A DNA stretch of 63,822 nucleotides, filler included, from Octopus bimaculoides (Eukaryota), in assembly GCF_001194135.2 (NCBI RefSeq). It is 6 parts of 5 records of this genome, joined end to end, with 100 filler letters (N's around TTAATTAATTAA, not from the genome) between each part and the next. Parts side by side here need not be neighbours in the genome. Positions count along the whole stretch, not along the records: positions 44,067 to 49,455 come from NC_068994.1; 5 more parts are not named here. The stretch is one strand, 5' to 3'. A program made the translations under genes and the position numbers. Below are positions 9,601 to 49,555 of this stretch, in pieces (position 1 is the stretch's first letter; each line of letters starts with the position of its first letter). Below the pieces are notes generated by a model. The model was not told the DNA's origin, did no database searches, and worked only from the letters and a program-made list of their open reading frames with translations.

Positions 9601-9914
9601 AACTACATCTCCATTCTTCCTCAGCATTCACAACATTCATCTCTACCCCCATCTTTAACCAAGTCATTCTCCTCTCATGCCTTAATGGACCTATTCAGCT
9701 ACCCTTCCCAATCCTCTGTCCATATTCTCTCATAAACTCACCTTCCTATACCTTGAAAATATGTTCTGATACCTTGTCACCACCATCTTTGTCTTCCTTC
9801 CAGTTACTCCCACTCACTTTATAAAATGTGGGATAGCCACTGATCTATTTTATAGCAAAACATCTGAGCCAGTCCCCTCTATTACACTTTAGCTTCTCAA
9901 CACCTAGCGTGGTT

Positions 9915-10560
9915 TCAGTGAAGTTCAAAGCAGCAATAAGAATAGGTTTTGTTATTCACACATAATAATCTCTTATGACAAACTAGAAGAAATGACATTC
10001 ATTTTTGCTTGGGATTTTGTTGAGCCAATCTATTATTTCGTTAGTTTTATTCTAGAGAGGTAATGTTGATTTTGTTTTTATATTTGGTGACAATTTGTCT
10101 GATTTTTTTTTTTTACTAATGATGCCTATGTCCAGTTTTGAAAGATTTACAAGTCTCATGCAAAGGTTGTCATTGAAGTTTGGTTTGTCCTCTTCCATGG
10201 TTATATATGGACATTTTGGTGTTAATGTGTCTACTCTATCATCTATTTTAAGCTTAATGACTATTTCTTTGGCTGTGGTGTTTATATCGTTTAAAGCTGC
10301 ATTTTGCTTCTTTTTTTTTTTTGTATTTGTATTTTTGTATGCATTAGAGAGAAAGCAGTTATAAGTGGTTTTACTTACCTGGTTGAAATTGTTTGACTTG
10401 TCTGATTTTACAAATATATTTAGAATTTTTTTTTTTTTTTTTGTGGTTGATTTTCTGTTTCAGTTCTTTTTGCAATTCGTTGATTTGCTTTTTGAGTTTC
10501 AGTTGCTTAATCACTGCAAATAGGTCATGTTTGAAGGGTTATAGCAATAGGGTATGTCAA
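9915..10560 (-). mobile_element. Penelope-like element RT, N-terminal to motif A (pseudogenised)
   Basis: Minus strand: PFKHDLFAVIKQLK...IFVKSDKSNNF...KIDDRVDTLTPKCPYITMEEDKPNFNDNLCMRLVNLSKLDIGIISKK...TNEIIDWLNKIPSK..HFF*FVIRDYYV*ITKPILIAALNF. Fits the PLE pattern ADKT.N / TLKDHK.NF / RLINP / FDI..FYPSI; frameshifts in A-runs. Confidence 0.8.
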
Positions 10561-11023
10561 CAAAATATCAACACACCCAGTTACTAAGGTTTAAAATACT
10601 GAACTTTGTATCTCTGACCTTTACATTGTCAAAGCAAAGGATTAAATTCAATAAAACCAAAATCAACTAAAATTACAGACATCCTGTGCCTGCTTAGCAA
10701 AAGGGACACACCTAAATATGCACACTTGCTTACAAACCTCTTGTACATGAATAAATTCTGAACAATAACATAACCCCAAATTTAATCAATCAAAATTTTT
10801 CCAAAACACCTCTCCATAACAATCCAGCCTAAAACCTAATTGCCACTCCACTCAAACCTACACACCAAAGGAAGATTTTTAACTCAGCAGAGACTATGTA
10901 AAGCCTAGGTTAACTTTAAAGCACTACATTCGTACGATGGCTTAACTGCCCAAAACTTTGAAGTCACTGTCAATAATATTCTTGTTTATGAATAACAAAT
11001 ACACACACACACACATATATATA

Positions 11024-11258
11024 CAAGGGGGTGCTGAAAAGTTCCTGACTTTGGGTAAAAGAAAATACAGGAGGACAAATTAATTACGATTTTATGCTGC
11101 ATTCACACACTCATTGCACATTTATTGCAGCAGATTCACACACTTACTGCAGCAGTCCTTCGGTTTTTCTAAGCCCTGTAAAAGAACTTGGAAGGCTGAG
11201 CCTCCAGCCAGACCTTTTGTGATACCCTTAAATTCAGGAACTTCTCAGTACCCCCTCA
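11024..11258. mobile_element. Mariner-derived MITE
   Basis: TA-caagggggtgctgaaaagttcctgact ... caggaacttctcagtaccccctca-TA; second copy in opposite orientation at 14287-14497. Confidence 0.8.
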
Positions 11259-14110
11259 TATATGGACACTCCCATGAAAGACAATGTATGAGCATTCAGC
11301 TTCATAAAAACGACCTGCACAAAGGATTTGTTTATAGTGATCAAATGTTCGTGTTGCACATCAGCTCACTCTTTCCATCAAATCGATGTTGTCTGAATAG
11401 GTGTATGGTGTACCACGTGTTGGGTGTCTAAATGATTGCAGAGCAACGTGAGATGAAGTGTTTTGCTCAAGAACACAATGCAACAGCTGGTCTAGGAATT
11501 GAAATCACGATCTCGCGATCATGAGTGCAACACACAAACCACTAAGCCATGTACTTATATGTATATAATATATACATATACATATATATATATATACATA
11601 TNNNNNNNNNNNNNNNNNNNNNNNNNNNNNNNNNNNNNNNNNNNNNNNNNNNNNNNNNNNNNNNNNNNNNNNNNNNNNNNNNNNNNNNNNNNNNNNNNNN
11701 NNNNNNNNNNNNNNNNNNNNNNNNNNNNNNNNNNNNNNNNNNNNNNNNNNNNNNNNNNNNNNNNNNNNNNNNNNNNNNNNNNNNNNNNNNNNNNNNNNNN
11801 NNNNNNNNNNNNNNNNNNNNNNNNNNNNNNNNNNNNNNNNNNNNNNNNNNNNNNNNNNNNNNNNNNNNNNNNNNNNNNNNNNNNNNNNNNNNNNNNNNNN
11901 NNNNNNNNNNNNNNNNNNNNNNNNNNNNNNNNNNNNNNNNNNNNNNNNNNNNNNNNNNNNNNNNNNNNNNNNNNNNNNNNNNNNNNNNNNNNNNNNNNNN
12001 NNNNNNNNNNNNNNNNNNNNNNNNNNNNNNNNNNNNNNNNNNNNNNNNNNNNNNNNNNNNNNNNNNNNNNNNNNNNNNNNNNNNNNNNNNNNNNNNNNNN
12101 NNNNNNNNNNNNNNNNNNNNNNNNNNNNNNNNNNNNNNNNNNNNNNNNNNNNNNNNNNNNNNNNNNNNNNNNNNNNNNNNNNNNNNNNNNNNNNNNNNNN
12201 NNNNNNNNNNNNNNNNNNNNNNNNNNNNNNNNNNNNNNNNNNNNNNNNNNNNNNNNNNNNNNNNNNNNNNNNNNNNNNNNNNNNNNNNNNNNNNNNNNNN
12301 NNNNNNNNNNNNNNNNNNNNNNNNNNNNNNNNNNNNNNNTCTATTGATTATTGATTATTAATTACTAATTATTTAAAAATAATGAATAATTCACAAGAAG
12401 AATTCAGTTTAAAATAACTAATTCGTTTTTAAATGCGAATACATGATATTTGAAATATAAATTAACATAAAATTATGATTGAAGGTCTTAATTTATATAT
12501 GGAATACTTTAAACTAAATGGTTTTGTATTATGCAACCAGCAGTGGTAGTCTCTGGTGGGTTGGTATTGAAAAGGTTAAAATATCTTCTGTCTGCTTCTA
12601 AGTATATTACTTTACACTCCCATTATTGACGTCTGAATGGTTCATTCTTACTGAATACAATAACTCTCTGTGTAGGTTGGTTCTTTTGGATGAGCCAAAA
12701 CTTACAGCTGGATTCATTAAAAGAGAATATCAAATTTTACAACATAGATGCATTGTTGCAATATAACCCTGGGTTGGTCCTGGTCAAGCAGACATTTGAT
12801 TGATCCAAAGCATTCCATCTAAGACTATCTGGCAGAGTGTATCTACAACTATATAATACAGTATACCTTTTCCCTTTTTTAGCCAGTAGGGTGTAATATG
12901 AAGGAGATTTGGCTATTATTTCTTGCAAATTGGACTACCACTCAGAAAATTCCTCATTAACTAATAAATATATTATTTACTAAAACAACATTTTTTCTAC
13001 TTTCTTTCACTAGAATTTTACACCTTTTATTTTTAAAAACAGAAAGGTATAAAATGAAGGTGGCTTGGATGCTATTTCTAGCAAATTGAGCTATCATATG
13101 ATGGGTCTTTCATTAAGTAATGAATGCTTTATTTATTTGAGTAATATTTTTTCCTTCTTTATTCCATAATCTCTTCTATGTTCCCATCCACTCCCCACCA
13201 TAAACAGCTCTTGCCATCATACTCGGTTTTTTTAATATAAGTTGGCTCCTGTTTCTCATTTAACATGTTTTTATACAATATAACCTGGAAGTTTTGATAT
13301 ATTACATAAACAGTGTTTTTTTCTCTTAATAGTTATCCATCAAACTACAGATTATTTACACACACACACCCATAATTCTCACACAGGTTATGTAAATAAT
13401 ATGCAGTAATGGAGAAAGAAAAATATAAACATTAAACTAATAACAAAAGAAATTGTCAGTTGTCATTGTTTAACCCTTGGCCGGCACTGCTAGAGTAGAT
13501 TTATGATCAAAAGCATTTTAGCAACAACCATCTTGCTACATTTTTTTTTTTTTTTTTTTTGCAGACACAGCAGATCAGGGGTGGAGAAATTTTTTAGTGC
13601 TGCGGGCAAAAATTTCCAAAGAAAACGGTCCATAGGCAAATCACAGGTTCCAACTCTTTGTAAATCTTGTATACATCTATGTATAATTCAATATACATTA
13701 ATAAAGATAATTAACACATCAAATTAATGTGTAACATCTTCATTAACACCACCAATGAATTTAGAATGTTTATATTACTTATGAGCTATTTTATGTTTTT
13801 CAGCCAGAGTGTTGGGTCTCAAGGGGGTGGAACAAACCCAGCAATATGTATTTTATAGTAAAAACAATATTTCCATTCAAATGGCAATTACTGGACGATT
13901 TTTTGTTTGAGTCTAAGTGTTTTAAGTTGTAGTGGAAACACGAACATATGTCGCAAATAAGCATACAAATATTGTATAAATTTTATAATTGAATAATTTA
14001 CTATATTTTGTACATACAAGTATACCAGCCTGCGGGTACAAAAAAACAGGCTTGCAGGTGCAATTGCACCCACAGGCAGGGGTTTCCCCACTCCTGGAGT
14101 AGCTAGATGC

Positions 14111-43966: not shown

Positions 43967-44287
43967 NNNNNNNNNNNNNNNNNNNNNNNNNNNNNNNNNN
44001 NNNNNNNNNNTTAATTAATTAANNNNNNNNNNNNNNNNNNNNNNNNNNNNNNNNNNNNNNNNNNNNTATATATATATATATATATACATACATACATACA
44101 TACATACATACATACATACATAAATACATACGTCGGCAGCAAATTTTGCGGAGCTCCTCCAACTGCTGTCGGCTTGTTGTAAACTTTCAGGTGTTAAAAT
44201 TTATAAACTGCCTTTAACGCAGCCTATGGTACTAGTATGAGCAGCGCCTCAAACCTTTAAATGTAGACTAGTTCGTGTATATATATG

Positions 44288-44319
<32 letters not shown>

Positions 44320-44552
44320 TGTACGTATAACTGGCATACAGACACATTCTTTCACCCGGCCTTTCTTTCTCTCTGTCTGTCTGTCTAACTACTCCGTATG
44401 TTTCTGTGTTTCTGTGTGCGCGCATGTGTTCAACAATGTAACTTTGTTTAGGTTGAGTGTGTAAGAACGTACTCTGCCTTCCTCGAAATACTTAACTACA
44501 CCCGCGTCGTCGAAATTTCAACAAAGAAATAAAGTACGAACGAAAAGAGAAC

Positions 44553-44584
<32 letters not shown>

Positions 44585-45801
44585 GGTGGGGGTGAAAAAG
44601 AAACAAAAAAAGCTCGGTGAGGCGACTAAATAAATAAATAAATAAAAACCATTACCTCCTGGGTATTTTACTCTCGTTTTNNNNNNNNNNNNNNNNNNNN
44701 NNNNNNNNNNNNNNNNNNNNNNNNNNNNNNNNNNNNNNNNNNNNNNNNNNNNNNNNNNNNNNNNNNNNNNNNNNNNNNNNNNNNNNNNNNNNNNNNNNNN
44801 NNNNNNNNNNNNNNNNNNNNNNNNNNNNNNNNNNNNNNNNNNNNNNNNNNNNNNNNNNNNNNNNNNNNNNNNNNNNNNNNNNNNNNNNNNNNNNNNNNNN
44901 NNNNNNNNNNNNNNNNNNNNNNNNNNNNNNNNNNNNNNNNNNNNNNNNNNNNNNNNNNNNNNNNNNNNNNNNNNNNNNNNNNNNNNNNNNNNNNNNNNNN
45001 NNNNNNNNNNNNNNNNNNNNNNNNNNNNNNNNNNNNNNNNNNNNNNNNNNNNNNNNNNNNNNNNNNNNNNNNNNNNNNNNNNNNNNNNNNNNNNNNNNNN
45101 NNNNNNNNNNNNNNNNNNNNNNNNNNNNNNNNNNNNNNNNNNNNNNNNNNNNNNNNNNNNNNNNNNNNNNNNNNNNNNNNNNNNNNNNNNNNNNNNNNNN
45201 NNNNNNNNNNNNNNNNNNNNNNNNNNNNNNNNNNNNNNNNNNNNNNNNNNNNNNNNNNNNNNNNNNNNNNNNNNNNNNNNNNNNNNNNNNNNNNNNNNNN
45301 NNNNNNNNNNNNNNNNNNNNNNNNNNNNNNNNNNNNNNNNNNNNNNNNNNNNNNNNNNNNNNNNNNNNNNNNNNNNNNNNNNNNNNNNNNNNNNNNNNNN
45401 NNNNNNNNNNNNNNNNNNNNNNNNNNNNNNNNNNNNNNNNNNNNNNNNNNNNNNNNNNNNNNNNNNNNNNNNNNNNNNNNNNNNNNNNNNNNNNNNNNNN
45501 NNNNNNNNNNNNNNNNNNNNNNNNNNNNNNNNNNNNNNNTCCCAAATCCTCGTTCTGGGTTTGAGCAGTGTGTTGTGTGTGTGTGTGTTGTGTGTGTGTG
45601 GGTATTATTAGTCAGCGTCGCGGACAACAGAGCAACAAGAAGAAGAAGAAGAAGACGAAGAAGACGAAGACGAAGAAGAAGAAGAAGAAGAAGGAGTAAG
45701 ACAAGGCAGGAGGGAGGAGTGCTTCTCGCTTCAGCTCCGCTTTCTCCTGTCAAAACATTTGTGTGTGTTGTCAGTAGTTTTTTCACCTTCGGAGCCGACA
45801 G

Positions 45802-45939
45802 ATGATCGACCAGCTCCTGAAACACACAGCAACAACAACAACAACAACAACAACAATAATAATAACAACACAGCAACAACAACAGCAACTGCAGCAGCAA
45901 CAGTTACACATTTTACAATACCATCTACAACAACGCTAA
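45802..45939 (+). other. Putative uORF (45 aa, poly-Thr/poly-Gln) in the presumed Slit 5' leader
   Basis: MIDQLLKHTATTTTTTTTIIITTQQQQQLQQQQLHILQYHLQQR*; same frame as Slit but stops at 45937-45939. Transcription not shown. Confidence 0.3.
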
Positions 45940-46185
45940 CAAACAATAACAACACCGAAAAATTCACACACACACACACACACACAAAAAATCCCCCAGC
46001 ATCGCTAACTCCACCAACAAACTACAACACTAACATCGCCACTAATAACAGCAACCACCGCAACAACAACAGCAACAACAACAACAATAACAATTGCTAC
46101 ACCTTAAAACCCATCGACAATTCCAATATTGGCAATCGCAAAAGCAACAACAACTACAACAACATCGGTCACACCGACAACAACG

Positions 46186-46293
46186 ATGACGAATGCGACG
46201 ATGGTTAGGATGACAATAACTAGTAAAACACCTGAAAAAACAACTTCGTGTTTTATGCCCTCTTCACGTGGTACTACTACTACTACTACTACA

Positions 46294-46327
<34 letters not shown>

Positions 46328-46655
46328 ATACTAATAATAATATTACTACAACTGCAACGGATAATACTACTGTTACTACTATTGCTACTCCTTTGTCTGC
46401 TTCCGTCATATCGCCCCTCATTTCAACTTCAGTCACCGTACCCATCCCTTCACACGCGTTGTCGTCGTCGTCGTCATCGCCAACGCCGTCATCTTCATTA
46501 CCGTTATCACCACCGTCACCGCCGCCATCATTACCATCACCAGCTTCATCGTCGTCGTCGTCGTCGTCGTCGTTGTCATCGTCATCGTCAGCACTACAAC
46601 CACCACCACTATCAACATCAATATTATCGACACGGGATCAACTAGTTACTACGAA

Positions 46656-46691
<36 letters not shown>

Positions 46692-46692
46692 A
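46186..46692 (+). CDS. Possible low-complexity N-terminal extension of Slit (169 aa; T18, poly-S/P, N11)
   Basis: No stop from 46129 to the donor; in-frame ATGs at 46186, 46201 (acgATGg), 46210 and 46255; only triplet repeats. Could equally be 5' UTR. Confidence 0.4.
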
Positions 46693-47000
46693 ATGATGTC
46701 GTCGATGACTGGAATTAAACCTTCGTTCTCTGGGGCCTCCTCGCTCTCTGGCCCAACTTCCTCCGGTGGTCGCCACTTTGTTTGTCACCCGTCGGCACTG
46801 CGCTTTTTACTAGTGTTCACGTTAACCTTGGCTTTACCACAGGTCGATGCCCGCTACGGACTGGCCATGAGAATGTACAACGGTTTCAGCACGGGCCGCA
46901 ATTGTCCGACCAGTTGTTCATGTATTGGAACCACTGTGGACTGTAGCTTTCGGAATCTGCAATATGTACCGAGTGATATACCCAAGGACACAAAGAGATT
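46693..47000 (+). CDS. slit: Slit-like axon-guidance ligand, first coding exon (signal segment plus LRRNT)
   Basis: MMSSMTG...ALRFLLVFTLTLALPQVDA-RYG...CPTSCSCIGTTVDCSFRNLQYVPSDIPKDTKRL. Closely follows the Slit N-terminal cap as I recall it (human SLIT2 [33 protein letters not shown]). Exon ends TT|GTAAGT at 47000/47001, phase 2 in the Leu codon, the usual Slit LRR exon boundary. Another LRR gene is not excluded without downstream exons. Confidence 0.8.
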
Positions 47001-47009
47001 GTAAGTACA

Positions 47010-47058
<49 letters not shown>

Positions 47059-47074
47059 GTCGTTGTTGTTGTTG

Positions 47075-47106
<32 letters not shown>

Positions 47107-47439
47107 GAGAGAGCAGCGCATGCCATCAAAGTGAGACTGAAGTACAAATATACGAAACCCAAATAGACCCATCATGACTACCCGTCTGATAAGGGTACAT
47201 CAAGCTCATACATCATACATATACATCATACACATACATCATACACAACCATATGTGCGCGACATAGTTATTTAGAATTCCGCCGAGGTCGACTTTGCCT
47301 TTCCTCCCTTCGGGATCGATAAATAAAGTACCAGTCAAGTACTGGGATCGATGTGATCAACTTACTCCCTCCCGCAAAATTTCAGGCCTTGTGCCTACAG
47401 TAGAAAGCATTATTATTATCATCATTATTATTATTATTA

Positions 47440-47484
<45 letters not shown>

Positions 47485-47511
47485 CTTTTAAATGTTCACT
47501 TGTTTCGTATT

Positions 47512-47810
47512 GGGGTGCGTGGCCTGATGGTTAGAAGTGCTGGACTAACGAACGTTAGGACGTAGATTTCGATTCTCATGTCGGGGTGGCATGTCGTGTC
47601 CTTGAGCAAGCACCAAGTATACTCGACTGAAATTTAATTTAATCATCGGTGTTATTTGTGAATTAACCCTCCGGTGAACTGTCGCCCCGTCCAGGAAGGT
47701 GGTTGTCCCACACCCTAAACGGTTTGAAATCGACGAATGTCCTCCAGCCTCCAGGACCTGTGAGCTAGAGGCAGGTTTTGGTATCAAGCATTGCACTAGG
47801 GACATACATA
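47512..47810 (+). mobile_element. tRNA-headed SINE (V/Meta-like core) in Slit intron 1
   Basis: gggtgcgtggcctgatggttag...tttcgattctc...gtgtccttgagcaagcac...ctgtcgccccgtccagg. Confidence 0.6.
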
Positions 47811-49555
47811 TCGACCTCCCTATCACCACCACCACCACCACCACCACTGCTCATTTTTCATCGATATCTATATACCGAAATGCTAAATCAGCGTTTTTGA
47901 CAGAAGCAGGTAAATTATGCAGGTTTCTATTGGTAAGCATAAATACAGGAAGATACTCACAGATACACATCTGTGACAGGTTTCTGTACAGTTTCTGCGC
48001 ACCATACCTAAACCCGATATTAAAGTAGAAAAATAAGTTTCAACGTGTTGTGGGATCGAACCAAGAGTAACATGCCTGTAAACTGAACTTATTAACAACA
48101 CGGCTTTGCTAGGTTTATATATAGGTATTAATGAATGTAATGTATGTATGCATATATATANNNNNNNNNNNNNNNNNNNNNNNNNNNNNNNNNNNNNNNN
48201 NNNNNNNNNNNNNNNNNNNNNNNNNNNNNNNNNNNNNNNNNNNNNNNNNNNNNNNNNNNNNNNNNNNNNNNNNNNNNNNNNNNNNNNNNNNNNNNNNNNN
48301 NNNNNNNNNNNNNNNNNNNNNNNNNNNNNNNNNNNNNNNNNNNNNNNNNNNNNNNNNNNNNNNNNNNNNNNNNNNNNNNNNNNNNNNNNNNNNNNNNNNN
48401 NNNNNNNNNNNNNNNNNNNNNNNNNNNNNNNNNNNNNNNNNNNNNNNNNNNNNNNNNNNNNNNNNNNNNNNNNNNNNNNNNNNNNNNNNNNNNNNNNNNN
48501 NNNNNNNNNNNNNNNNNNNNNNNNNNNNNNNNNNNNNNNNNNNNNNNNNNNNNNNNNNNNNNNNNNNNNNNNNNNNNNNNNNNNNNNNNNNNNNNNNNNN
48601 NNNNNNNNNNNNNNNNNNNNNNNNNNNNNNNNNNNNNNNNNNNNNNNNNNNNNNNNNNNNNNNNNNNNNNNNNNNNNNNNNNNNNNNNNNNNNNNNNNNN
48701 NNNNNNNNNNNNNNNNNNNNNNNNNNNNNNNNNNNNNNNNNNNNNNNNNNNNNNNNNNNNNNNNNNNNNNNNNNNNNNNNNNNNNNNNNNNNNNNNNNNN
48801 NNNNNNNNNNNNNNNNNNNNNNNNNNNNNNNNNNNNNNNNNNNNNNNNNNNNNNNNNNNNNNNNNNNNNNNNNNNNNNNNNNNNNNNNNNNNNNNNNNNN
48901 NNNNNNNNNNNNNNNNNNNNNNNNNNNNNNNNNNNNNNNNNNNNNNNNNNNNNNNNNNNNNNNNNNNNNNNNNNNNNNNNNNNNNNNNNNNNNNNNNNNN
49001 NNNNNNNNNNNNNNNNNNNNNNNNNNNNNNNNNNNNNNNNNNNNNNNNNNNNNNNNNATATATATATATATAACTGCCTGAAACTGTAGGGACATCTGTT
49101 AACTTAACTGAAGAAAGAAAGCCACGAATGATCCGTCCTTTTTTTTTCCTGGCCCTCTAATAGTTGTTTTTCCTGTCCACCTTTTATCGTCTATCTGTTC
49201 GGATCTTTTATTGTCCTCTATTGCGTTTTTGTTCCCTTTTATAACTATATATATACTCCTTATATATTCATACATGTGCATATATATTCCAACATATATA
49301 CATGTATCTATGTATTCTATGTGTGTTTGTGTGTGTTTGTGTGTACATGTATATATATATGTGTGTGTATGTATGTATCTATATATATATATATATATAT
49401 ATGAATGTATATATATGTATATATATATATGTATAAATATATATGTATGTATATANNNNNNNNNNNNNNNNNNNNNNNNNNNNNNNNNNNNNNNNNNNNT
49501 TAATTAATTAANNNNNNNNNNNNNNNNNNNNNNNNNNNNNNNNNNNNNNNNNNNN

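Follow-up and report, generated by a model that had tools for sequence, protein, structure and literature searches.

Slit is a textbook secreted guidance cue, and the range over which it acts depends on its release and retention. In canonical Slits (Drosophila Slit and vertebrate SLIT1-3) exon 1 encodes a signal sequence and then the first LRRNT domain, ends after ...RL at a GTAAG donor, and places the hydrophobic core of the signal sequence within the first 10-30 residues. Longer presequences are known from two-part signal peptides, which are described by the NtraC model and represented by the 98-residue signal peptide of MMTV Rem/Env, and in which an extended N-terminal part precedes normal h- and c-regions; those documented measure ~40-150 residues, and signal peptidase cleaves peptides of the NtraC type (PMC2447879, PMC8725593). 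In type II signal-anchor proteins a long cytosolic N-terminal region precedes the hydrophobic segment, which is thus internal, and it is the C-terminal domain that is translocated; the h-region usually measures ~20 residues and lacks a used cleavage site (PMC11579918). Finally, proteoforms with extended N-termini arise from upstream in-frame AUGs or from alternative transcription starts.

The locus described here, a candidate Slit exon of Octopus bimaculoides, compares with each of these systems in part. It has the canonical order of signal sequence, first LRRNT and donor, but its hydrophobic core begins at residue 38 or 207, depending on the ATG used, and a 16-residue spacer (RYGLAMRMYNGFSTGR), conserved with the one relative that we found (L001), precedes the LRRNT. 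The extended N-terminal part ahead of normal h- and c-regions recalls the long signal peptides, but the putative octopus leader would run to ~220 residues and is low-complexity and unconserved, while that of L001 would exceed 120 residues and possibly reach ~480. The internal position of the hydrophobic segment, with the C-terminal domain to be translocated, is that of a type II anchor, whereas the core is 11 residues long and is followed by a conserved cleavage motif. As in extended proteoforms, AUGs in good context lie upstream with no stop between; the candidate extension, however, is largely microsatellite.

Identity of the octopus exon

The window, that is, the whole stretch of DNA analysed, is 63,822 nucleotides long and consists of joined parts of the O. 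bimaculoides genome. The exon lies in the piece at 44067-49455 (NC_068994.1), which is AT-rich and microsatellite-laden and has N gaps at 44681-45540 and 48162-49057. The features that bear on its identity and on its signal sequence are as follows.

46804-46836, plus strand: h-region of the signal sequence, an 11-residue hydrophobic core FLLVFTLTLAL (Kyte-Doolittle 2.62 over 9 residues and 1.65 over 19)
46843-46851, plus strand: c-region V-D-A, with a predicted cut A|R between 46851 and 46852 (-3/-1 rule and conservation with L001)
46852-46899, plus strand: conserved 16-residue spacer RYGLAMRMYNGFSTGR, the predicted mature N-terminus
46900-46983, plus strand: LRRNT domain (Pfam PF01462, E = 4e-10), nearest to the first LRRNT (D1) of full-length Slits
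47001-47006, plus strand: splice donor GTAAGT, with the exon end at 47000 in phase 2, after ...KDTKR-L

The exon product contains one LRRNT, which scored 39.4 bits in Pfam against a cutoff of 25.8 and follows the Slit pattern CPxxCxCxGxxVDCSxxxLxxVPxDIPxxTxRL. Compared with one full-length Slit, it is 61% identical to D1 over 33 aa versus 39% for D2. When the 103-aa exon product was run against 1.84 billion representatives in an exhaustive HMMER search, the best matches included full-length proteins with four LRRNT matches. All three of the full-length matches that were scanned carry LRR and EGF domains, and two of them (1427 and 1471 aa) also carry laminin-G. The position of the exon end, after ...(E/K)RL of the first LRRNT, recurs in L001 and in ~32 exon-1 ORF calls from other animals; the calls that end at ...ERL in other animals are Slit exon 1 read into the GTAAG donor. 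These ~32 ORFs are 55-166 aa long, compared to 534 in L001 and 272-298 in octopus. A complete Slit has four LRR domains, EGF repeats, laminin-G and a cystine knot at its C-terminus, of which the piece covers exon 1. The LRRNT alone matches lamprey variable lymphocyte receptors equally well, and neither the 2.4 kb downstream in octopus nor the 4.3 kb downstream in L001 revealed an exon 2. Judged from exon 1 alone, the assignment of the octopus exon as a Slit-type exon 1 is well supported but not proven.

Other searches for relatives were negative. Word-indexed protein searches, one for the 103-aa exon product and one for the last 217 aa of P0002, the ORF call carried by L001, gave no matches; P0002 itself was absent from the results of the second, which places these sequences outside the coverage of that index. 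JGI metagenomes were scanned with a peptide pattern derived from an alignment and, for NGFSTGxNCP, with a degenerate DNA pattern; neither yielded a relative, the sole match to the DNA pattern (L002) being a chance match. A literature search on cephalopod Slit N-termini returned nothing usable.

An open frame and two groups of candidate start codons

Upstream of the signal sequence the Slit frame continues open through a repeat-rich leader, which is bounded by the following features.

46105-46107, plus strand: last in-frame stop codon (TAA) in a frame scan; the frame is open from 46108
46186-46257, plus strand: four in-frame ATGs, at 46186, 46201, 46210 and 46255, with an out-of-frame ATG at 46193 among them
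46186-46692, plus strand: stop-free in-frame leader of 169 codons, MTNATMVRMTITSK...T18...S/T/P-rich...S9...N11 A
46693-46707, plus strand: proximal ATGs at 46693, 46696 and 46705, the conventional start candidates

An earlier, sequence-only reading of this DNA had noted the lack of a stop between 46129 and the donor. The frame is indeed open, and slightly further than described, for 298 codons from 46108 to the next stop, a TAA at 47002-47004 that lies within the donor GTAAGT. Of the five ATGs in 46108-46260 only one is out of frame, and three of the four in-frame ones have A at -3. Their contexts are A-3/A+4 at 46186, A-3/G+4 at 46201, A-3/A+4 at 46210 and T-3/C+4 at 46255; the proximal ATGs have G-3/A+4 (46693), A-3/T+4 (46696) and T-3/A+4 (46705). 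The proposal that the upstream ATGs have the better context holds in that 46201 alone, among the in-frame ATGs, has both favoured positions (-3 and +4), but 46693 and 46696 also have a purine at -3. No ATG in any frame occurs in 46256-46687 (P = 0.086). An out-of-frame ATG at 46688 opens a 2-codon mini-uORF (ATG CAA TGA), with which the ATGs at 46693 and 46696 overlap; if this DNA is 5'UTR, the mini-uORF could damp initiation at the conventional start.

Translation from 46186 would begin MTNATMVRMTITSKTPEKTTSCFMPSSRG and continue into T18, a Thr/Asn/Ile stretch, a Ser/Thr/Pro-rich part with S6, S9 and S5, and then N11 and A-MMSSM. Thirty polar residues, including R27, H28 and R37 (numbered from M46693), separate A-MMSSM from the hydrophobic core, and 3' of the core the order is P-Q-V-D-A|R-Y, the 16-residue spacer and the LRRNT.

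The hydrophobic segment has the size of a signal-peptide h-region

The core spans residues 38-48 counted from M46693 and residues 207-217 counted from M46186. The latter agrees with the earlier statement that an upstream start would place the segment about 200 residues in; the statement that it is late for a signal peptide even from 46693 also stands, with the core starting at residue 38 rather than 35.

Cleavable ER signal peptides have a basic n-region, an h-region of 7-15 residues, small residues at -3 and -1 and no proline at +1. The octopus segment is preceded by basic residues (R27, H28 and R37), has a core of 11 residues within an uncharged stretch of 14 residues between R37 and D52, and is followed by P-Q-V-D-A|R-Y, in which P occupies -5, V -3, A -1 and R +1, with no P at +1 and the motif conserved in L001. 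This corresponds to the classical -3/-1 rule of cleavage (summarised in PMC11579918). The segment does not lie at the extreme N-terminus behind an n-region of few residues, given that its core starts at residue 38 from M46693 or 207 from M46186. A type II signal anchor, by comparison, has a hydrophobic span of ~18-25 residues and no used cleavage site after it. Here the core is 11 residues long and the conserved V-D-A follows it, and only its flanks bring the Kyte-Doolittle value over 19 residues to a borderline 1.65. The hydrophobic segment is of signal-peptide h-region size and short for a membrane span.

Alignable sequence between octopus and L001 begins exactly at V-D-A|R-Y, a motif that the two share without a difference; a mature N-terminus at RY... 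would lead one to expect this. Cleavage by signal peptidase falls with a longer n-region in yeast model substrates, and anchors tend to have long n-regions (PMC11579918); cleavage has, however, been documented both for long signal peptides and for internal signal sequences (PMC2447879, PMC8725593, PMC13578380). The odds favour an ordinary, secreted mature Slit, whichever ATG is used.

Repeats and chance expectation in the octopus leader

Much of the leader is encoded by tandem arrays.

46273-46326, plus strand: Thr18, encoded by near-pure (ACT)n within a TRF array at 46272-46389
46549-46589, plus strand: (TCG)n array encoding the Ser runs S9 and S5
46657-46689, plus strand: Asn11, encoded by (AAC)11, 100% pure
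45612-46206, plus strand: adjoining open frame of 198 codons without ATG, in frame +2 relative to 46693, in (GAA)n/(CAA)n/(CA)n DNA

The Ser runs of the leader lie at 46457-46479 and 46549-46589. As the sequence-only reading had observed, all tandem arrays within 46186-46692 have period 3, a (CA)11 dinucleotide array lies just 5' of the leader at 45965-45986, and the ACT/AAT repeats give TAA in another frame (frame +2, at 46326, 46332, 46335, 46338 and 46362). Nonetheless, the argument from period 3 does not discriminate, because triplet arrays are equally common in the intron, which holds (TAT)32 and (ATT)25, and in the upstream flank, with (AAG)19 and (AAC)23. The near-pure arrays of the leader look like young microsatellites, and would do so in coding and non-coding DNA alike.

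When the TRF arrays were kept intact and the 351 unique bases were shuffled, the probability of an open Slit frame was 0.027. Shuffling the dinucleotides of the whole region left the frame open in 0/2000 trials, and a five-frame stop-proximity test gave P = 6e-7; we set both aside as too generous, since neither takes account of how the DNA is built from repeats and the control frame next to the leader passes similar tests. Other frames across the leader are also long, the open stretches being 141 codons in frame +1 and 176 in one of the minus frames. The number of one-step paths to a stop per codon is 0.38 in frame 0 versus 0.44 and 0.46 in the other plus frames, and frame 0 has no stops.

The adjoining frame at 45612-46206 served as an internal control. 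It begins right after a TAG at 45609, contains (CA)11 and overlaps the Slit-frame ORF by 33 codons, and its openness has a nominal P of 0.01-0.02, from which it follows that openness tests are over-optimistic in such DNA. This frame could be a product of chance in stop-poor repeat DNA or a frameshift-separated relic of a longer leader. Because the repeat-preserving P is ~0.03 and the adjacent ATG-less frame is equally long, the octopus leader taken by itself is open only weakly beyond chance.

A distant relative has a longer open leader

L001, the one relative, is a 30-kb ENA metagenome contig (ERZ21867824, ctg78484l). Its 534-aa ORF call, P0002, was the one sequence in the exhaustive HMMER search that matched beyond the LRRNT, with residues 39-103 of the query aligned to its C-terminal 65. 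Of the 53 residues between the start of VDARY and the donor, 35 are identical (66%, counted by hand), and the DNA is 68% identical over the last 131 nt of the exon. The rest of the contig gave no further alignment to the octopus piece, which marks L001 as a distant relative, presumably another cephalopod.

The exon frame of L001 is open for 589 codons, from 9836 to 11602, with 0 stops. Over the 519 codons from 9836 to an ATG at 11393 it has 0 stops, compared to 35, 12, 14, 7 and 30 in the other five frames, and it is the sole stop-free frame of the six across this full length; within 10961-11392, which is non-repetitive, it again has 0, versus 10, 3, 5, 5 and 9. A stop-proximity estimate predicts ~18 stops (P ~2e-8), and the leader ORF has double the length of any other on the locus. 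In-frame ATGs are enriched in the leader (11 observed versus 5.2 in shuffles, P ~0.008) and out-of-frame ATGs are depleted (4 versus 10.3, P ~0.008). The strongest repeat arrays of the leader have periods of 3, 6, 9, 18, 30 and 36, with a few weak overlapping rows of 8, 14 and 16, while in the flanks periods of 1, 2, 5, 8 and 11 occur as well.

The only ATG near the L001 signal sequence, that at 11393, lies inside the hydrophobic core (M-FWLPILTTCLLLGTCTVDA|RY). A basic GRRRC n-region is encoded 5' of it, an out-of-frame ATG lies 13 nt before it, and the next in-frame ATGs upstream are at 11081/11090. Because the sole proximal ATG sits within the h-region and the n-region is encoded before it, translation of L001 almost certainly starts at least 100 codons 5' of the cleavage site, at 11081/11090 or further back.

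The leaders of octopus and L001 are not alignable, and there is no sequence conservation 5' of VDARY. The only features common to both are CAA-rich DNA upstream and an early Thr-rich ACT/ACA block, which is simple sequence. Two local resemblances were considered and discarded. A shared GATGACAAT at an in-frame ATG (octopus 46209-46217, L001 10000-10008) lies in an alignment around the ATGs that is not above shuffles (P = 0.06), and a BLASTN match of 80% between 46273-46331 and L001 10130-10188 falls in the Thr-rich block and carries little weight as simple sequence. What the two leaders share is openness, not sequence.

The sequence-only reading had suggested a comparison of orthologous first exons for stops and for indels in multiples of three. 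With one relative to compare, the first part favours a translated leader in L001, whose frame is stop-free (0/519 codons), while in octopus P is 0.027 and the control frame does equally well; the second part, and residue conservation likewise, gave no sign of a coding extension, the leaders not being alignable.

We made several further observations on the L001 leader. An uncharged hydrophobic stretch of 32 residues, LAVIVALCGVISGVASVATSAFLVTLTSALLC, is encoded at 11105-11200 (P0002 residues ~375-410) and is followed by a very basic segment of 55 residues and then by the signal sequence proper; it has no octopus counterpart, and in a product started at 11081/11090 it would look like an N-terminal signal or anchor. 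An in-frame 36-bp tandem repeat at 10829-10951 (3.4 copies, 95% identity) encodes (EVKEKRRAEMLG)n within a Glu/Lys/Arg-rich part of the leader. On the opposite strand, a frame of 262 codons is open over the leader at 9817-10605 (minus strand). Pfam and PDB searches of the leader found no domains.

Interpretation of the leader

On balance we consider translation of the octopus leader, in some transcripts or in all, slightly more probable than not, a statement that covers both readings with an upstream start. That it forms a long, fast-evolving leader that is cleaved off to leave an ordinary secreted Slit is the likeliest single reading but has, in our judgement, not quite an even chance. According to this proposal some transcripts at least would begin 5' of 46186, and ribosomes would initiate at 46186, 46201 or 46210. 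The precursor would carry a disordered, Thr/Ser/Pro/Asn-rich leader of ~170 residues that is kept cytosolic, the segment at residues 207-217 would act as an internal signal sequence, and signal peptidase would cut after V-D-A to release a secreted Slit starting RYGLAMR.... The leader would then be a very long, fast-evolving pre-sequence rather than a permanent anchor. Of this proposal, the frame with its ATGs, the LRRNT, the anatomy of the signal peptide and the openness of the L001 leader are seen in the sequence, whereas the site of transcription start, initiation upstream and the cut by signal peptidase are inferred.

Translation of the leader is supported because the L001 frame is open for 589 codons and shows a frame bias of its ATGs, because the L001 and octopus ORFs both exceed the 55-166 aa of other animals, and because in octopus itself the repeat-preserving probability is 0.027 and 4/5 ATGs are in frame. 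Cleavage is supported by the 11-residue core, the textbook site and the identity of VDA|RY in L001. Counting against translation are the single relative with an unalignable leader, the largely near-pure microsatellite composition, which is equally typical of non-coding DNA here, and the ATG-less frame of 198 codons that adjoins it at a similar nominal P. In addition, octopus, unlike L001, has usable proximal ATGs with a purine at -3, and the lack of ATGs in 46256-46687 is 5'UTR-like, although P is only 0.086. The lower signal-peptidase cleavage caused by long n-regions in yeast substrates (PMC11579918) counts against removal of the leader. Upstream initiation, as the sequence-only reading proposed it, is plausible and gains from L001, but the arguments originally drawn from triplet repeats and from the open frame are weak.

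A sizeable, if somewhat smaller, probability attaches to 46108-46692 being plain 5'UTR or promoter-proximal DNA, with transcription starting 3' of 46255 and translation at 46693 or 46696. The product would have a cleavable signal peptide of 53 residues, and the open frame would be a by-product of stop-free triplet microsatellite units. This fits the modest repeat-preserving P of 0.027, equalled by the ATG-less control next door, and the open frames of 141 codons (frame +1) and 176 codons (a minus frame); it also fits the near-purity of the leader arrays and the commonness of triplet repeats in intron and flank. The region of 46256-46687 without ATGs in any frame, the G and A at -3 of 46693 and 46696, the lack of conservation 5' of VDARY and the short N-terminal signal peptides of Slits in other animals point the same way. 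It leaves unexplained, however, the 589-codon open leader of L001 and its ATG frame bias, and it needs a promoter within the (ACT)n/(TCG)n arrays. Moreover, the core begins only at residue 38 even from 46693, and frame 0, no better protected from stops than the other plus frames (0.38 versus 0.44 and 0.46), nevertheless contains none. If the leader is plain 5'UTR, the locus is a case in which open frames of triplet repeats mislead gene models.

The sequence-only reading had gone further and inferred a tethered Slit, started at 46186 or 46201, in which the segment ~200 residues in is an uncleaved type II signal anchor that leaves a cytosolic low-complexity tail. We regard this as unlikely, and our results do not support it. 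In its favour, the frame is indeed open and does contain upstream ATGs, signal peptidase cuts less often behind a longer n-region, such as signal anchors generally have (PMC11579918), the Kyte-Doolittle profile peaks at 1.65 over 19 residues, borderline for a membrane span, and the L001 leader has an extra uncharged hydrophobic stretch of 32 residues. Nevertheless, a core of 11 residues (14 uncharged between R37 and D52) is short for spanning a bilayer, and the textbook V-D-A|R site with P at -5 is identical in L001, where conservation begins exactly at this point. There is precedent for the cleavage of long and of internal signal sequences (PMC2447879, PMC8725593, PMC13578380), and the tethered form depends on an unproven upstream start. 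Repeats of variable length might, as the sequence-only reading also supposed, render the protein polymorphic.

It is very improbable that 45612-46206 and 46108-47001 are one ORF of ~463 codons split by a single-base frameshift within 46108-46206, be it an assembly error of a gapped draft or a real lineage truncation: the open frames do adjoin, with a nominal P of 0.01-0.03 each and a 33-codon overlap, the L001 ORF of 534-589 codons is comparable and the draft is gapped, N runs lying on either side, but the frame +2 part has no ATG and starts right after the TAG at 45609, holds the (CA)11 dinucleotide array and is unlike the L001 leader beyond simple repeats.

If the favoured reading of a translated and cleaved leader is correct, two distant cephalopod-like genomes would be producing Slit in an unusual manner, through a long translated leader kept open in both. 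Such a leader could alter secretion efficiency or yield alternative isoforms, and under the minority reading it could hold the cue on the cell that makes it; it would be of interest for the wiring of the large cephalopod nervous system. We can also envisage, as an improbable extension, a cephalopod Slit with a fast-evolving cytosolic leader of several hundred residues and variable repeat length, which would remain uncleaved in some isoforms or lineages, or whose released fragment would be functional, making a tethered short-range cue.

Other features of the piece

Rfam and tRNA scans of the octopus piece gave only sub-threshold matches on simple repeats and zero tRNAs. Intron 1 contains two non-repetitive blocks, at 47270-47405 and 47495-47790, flanked by (ATT)n arrays; ARAGORN and Rfam detected no tRNA-like gene in them, and L001 has no copy. 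They resemble, and may be, SINE-type interspersed repeats of octopus genomes. Just 3' of the last in-frame stop and 54 nt 5' of the first in-frame ATG lies a palindrome, CCAATATTGG (46123-46132), which contains a CCAAT box and also matches the CArG pattern CC(A/T)6GG. As a post-hoc observation, it might be a promoter element.
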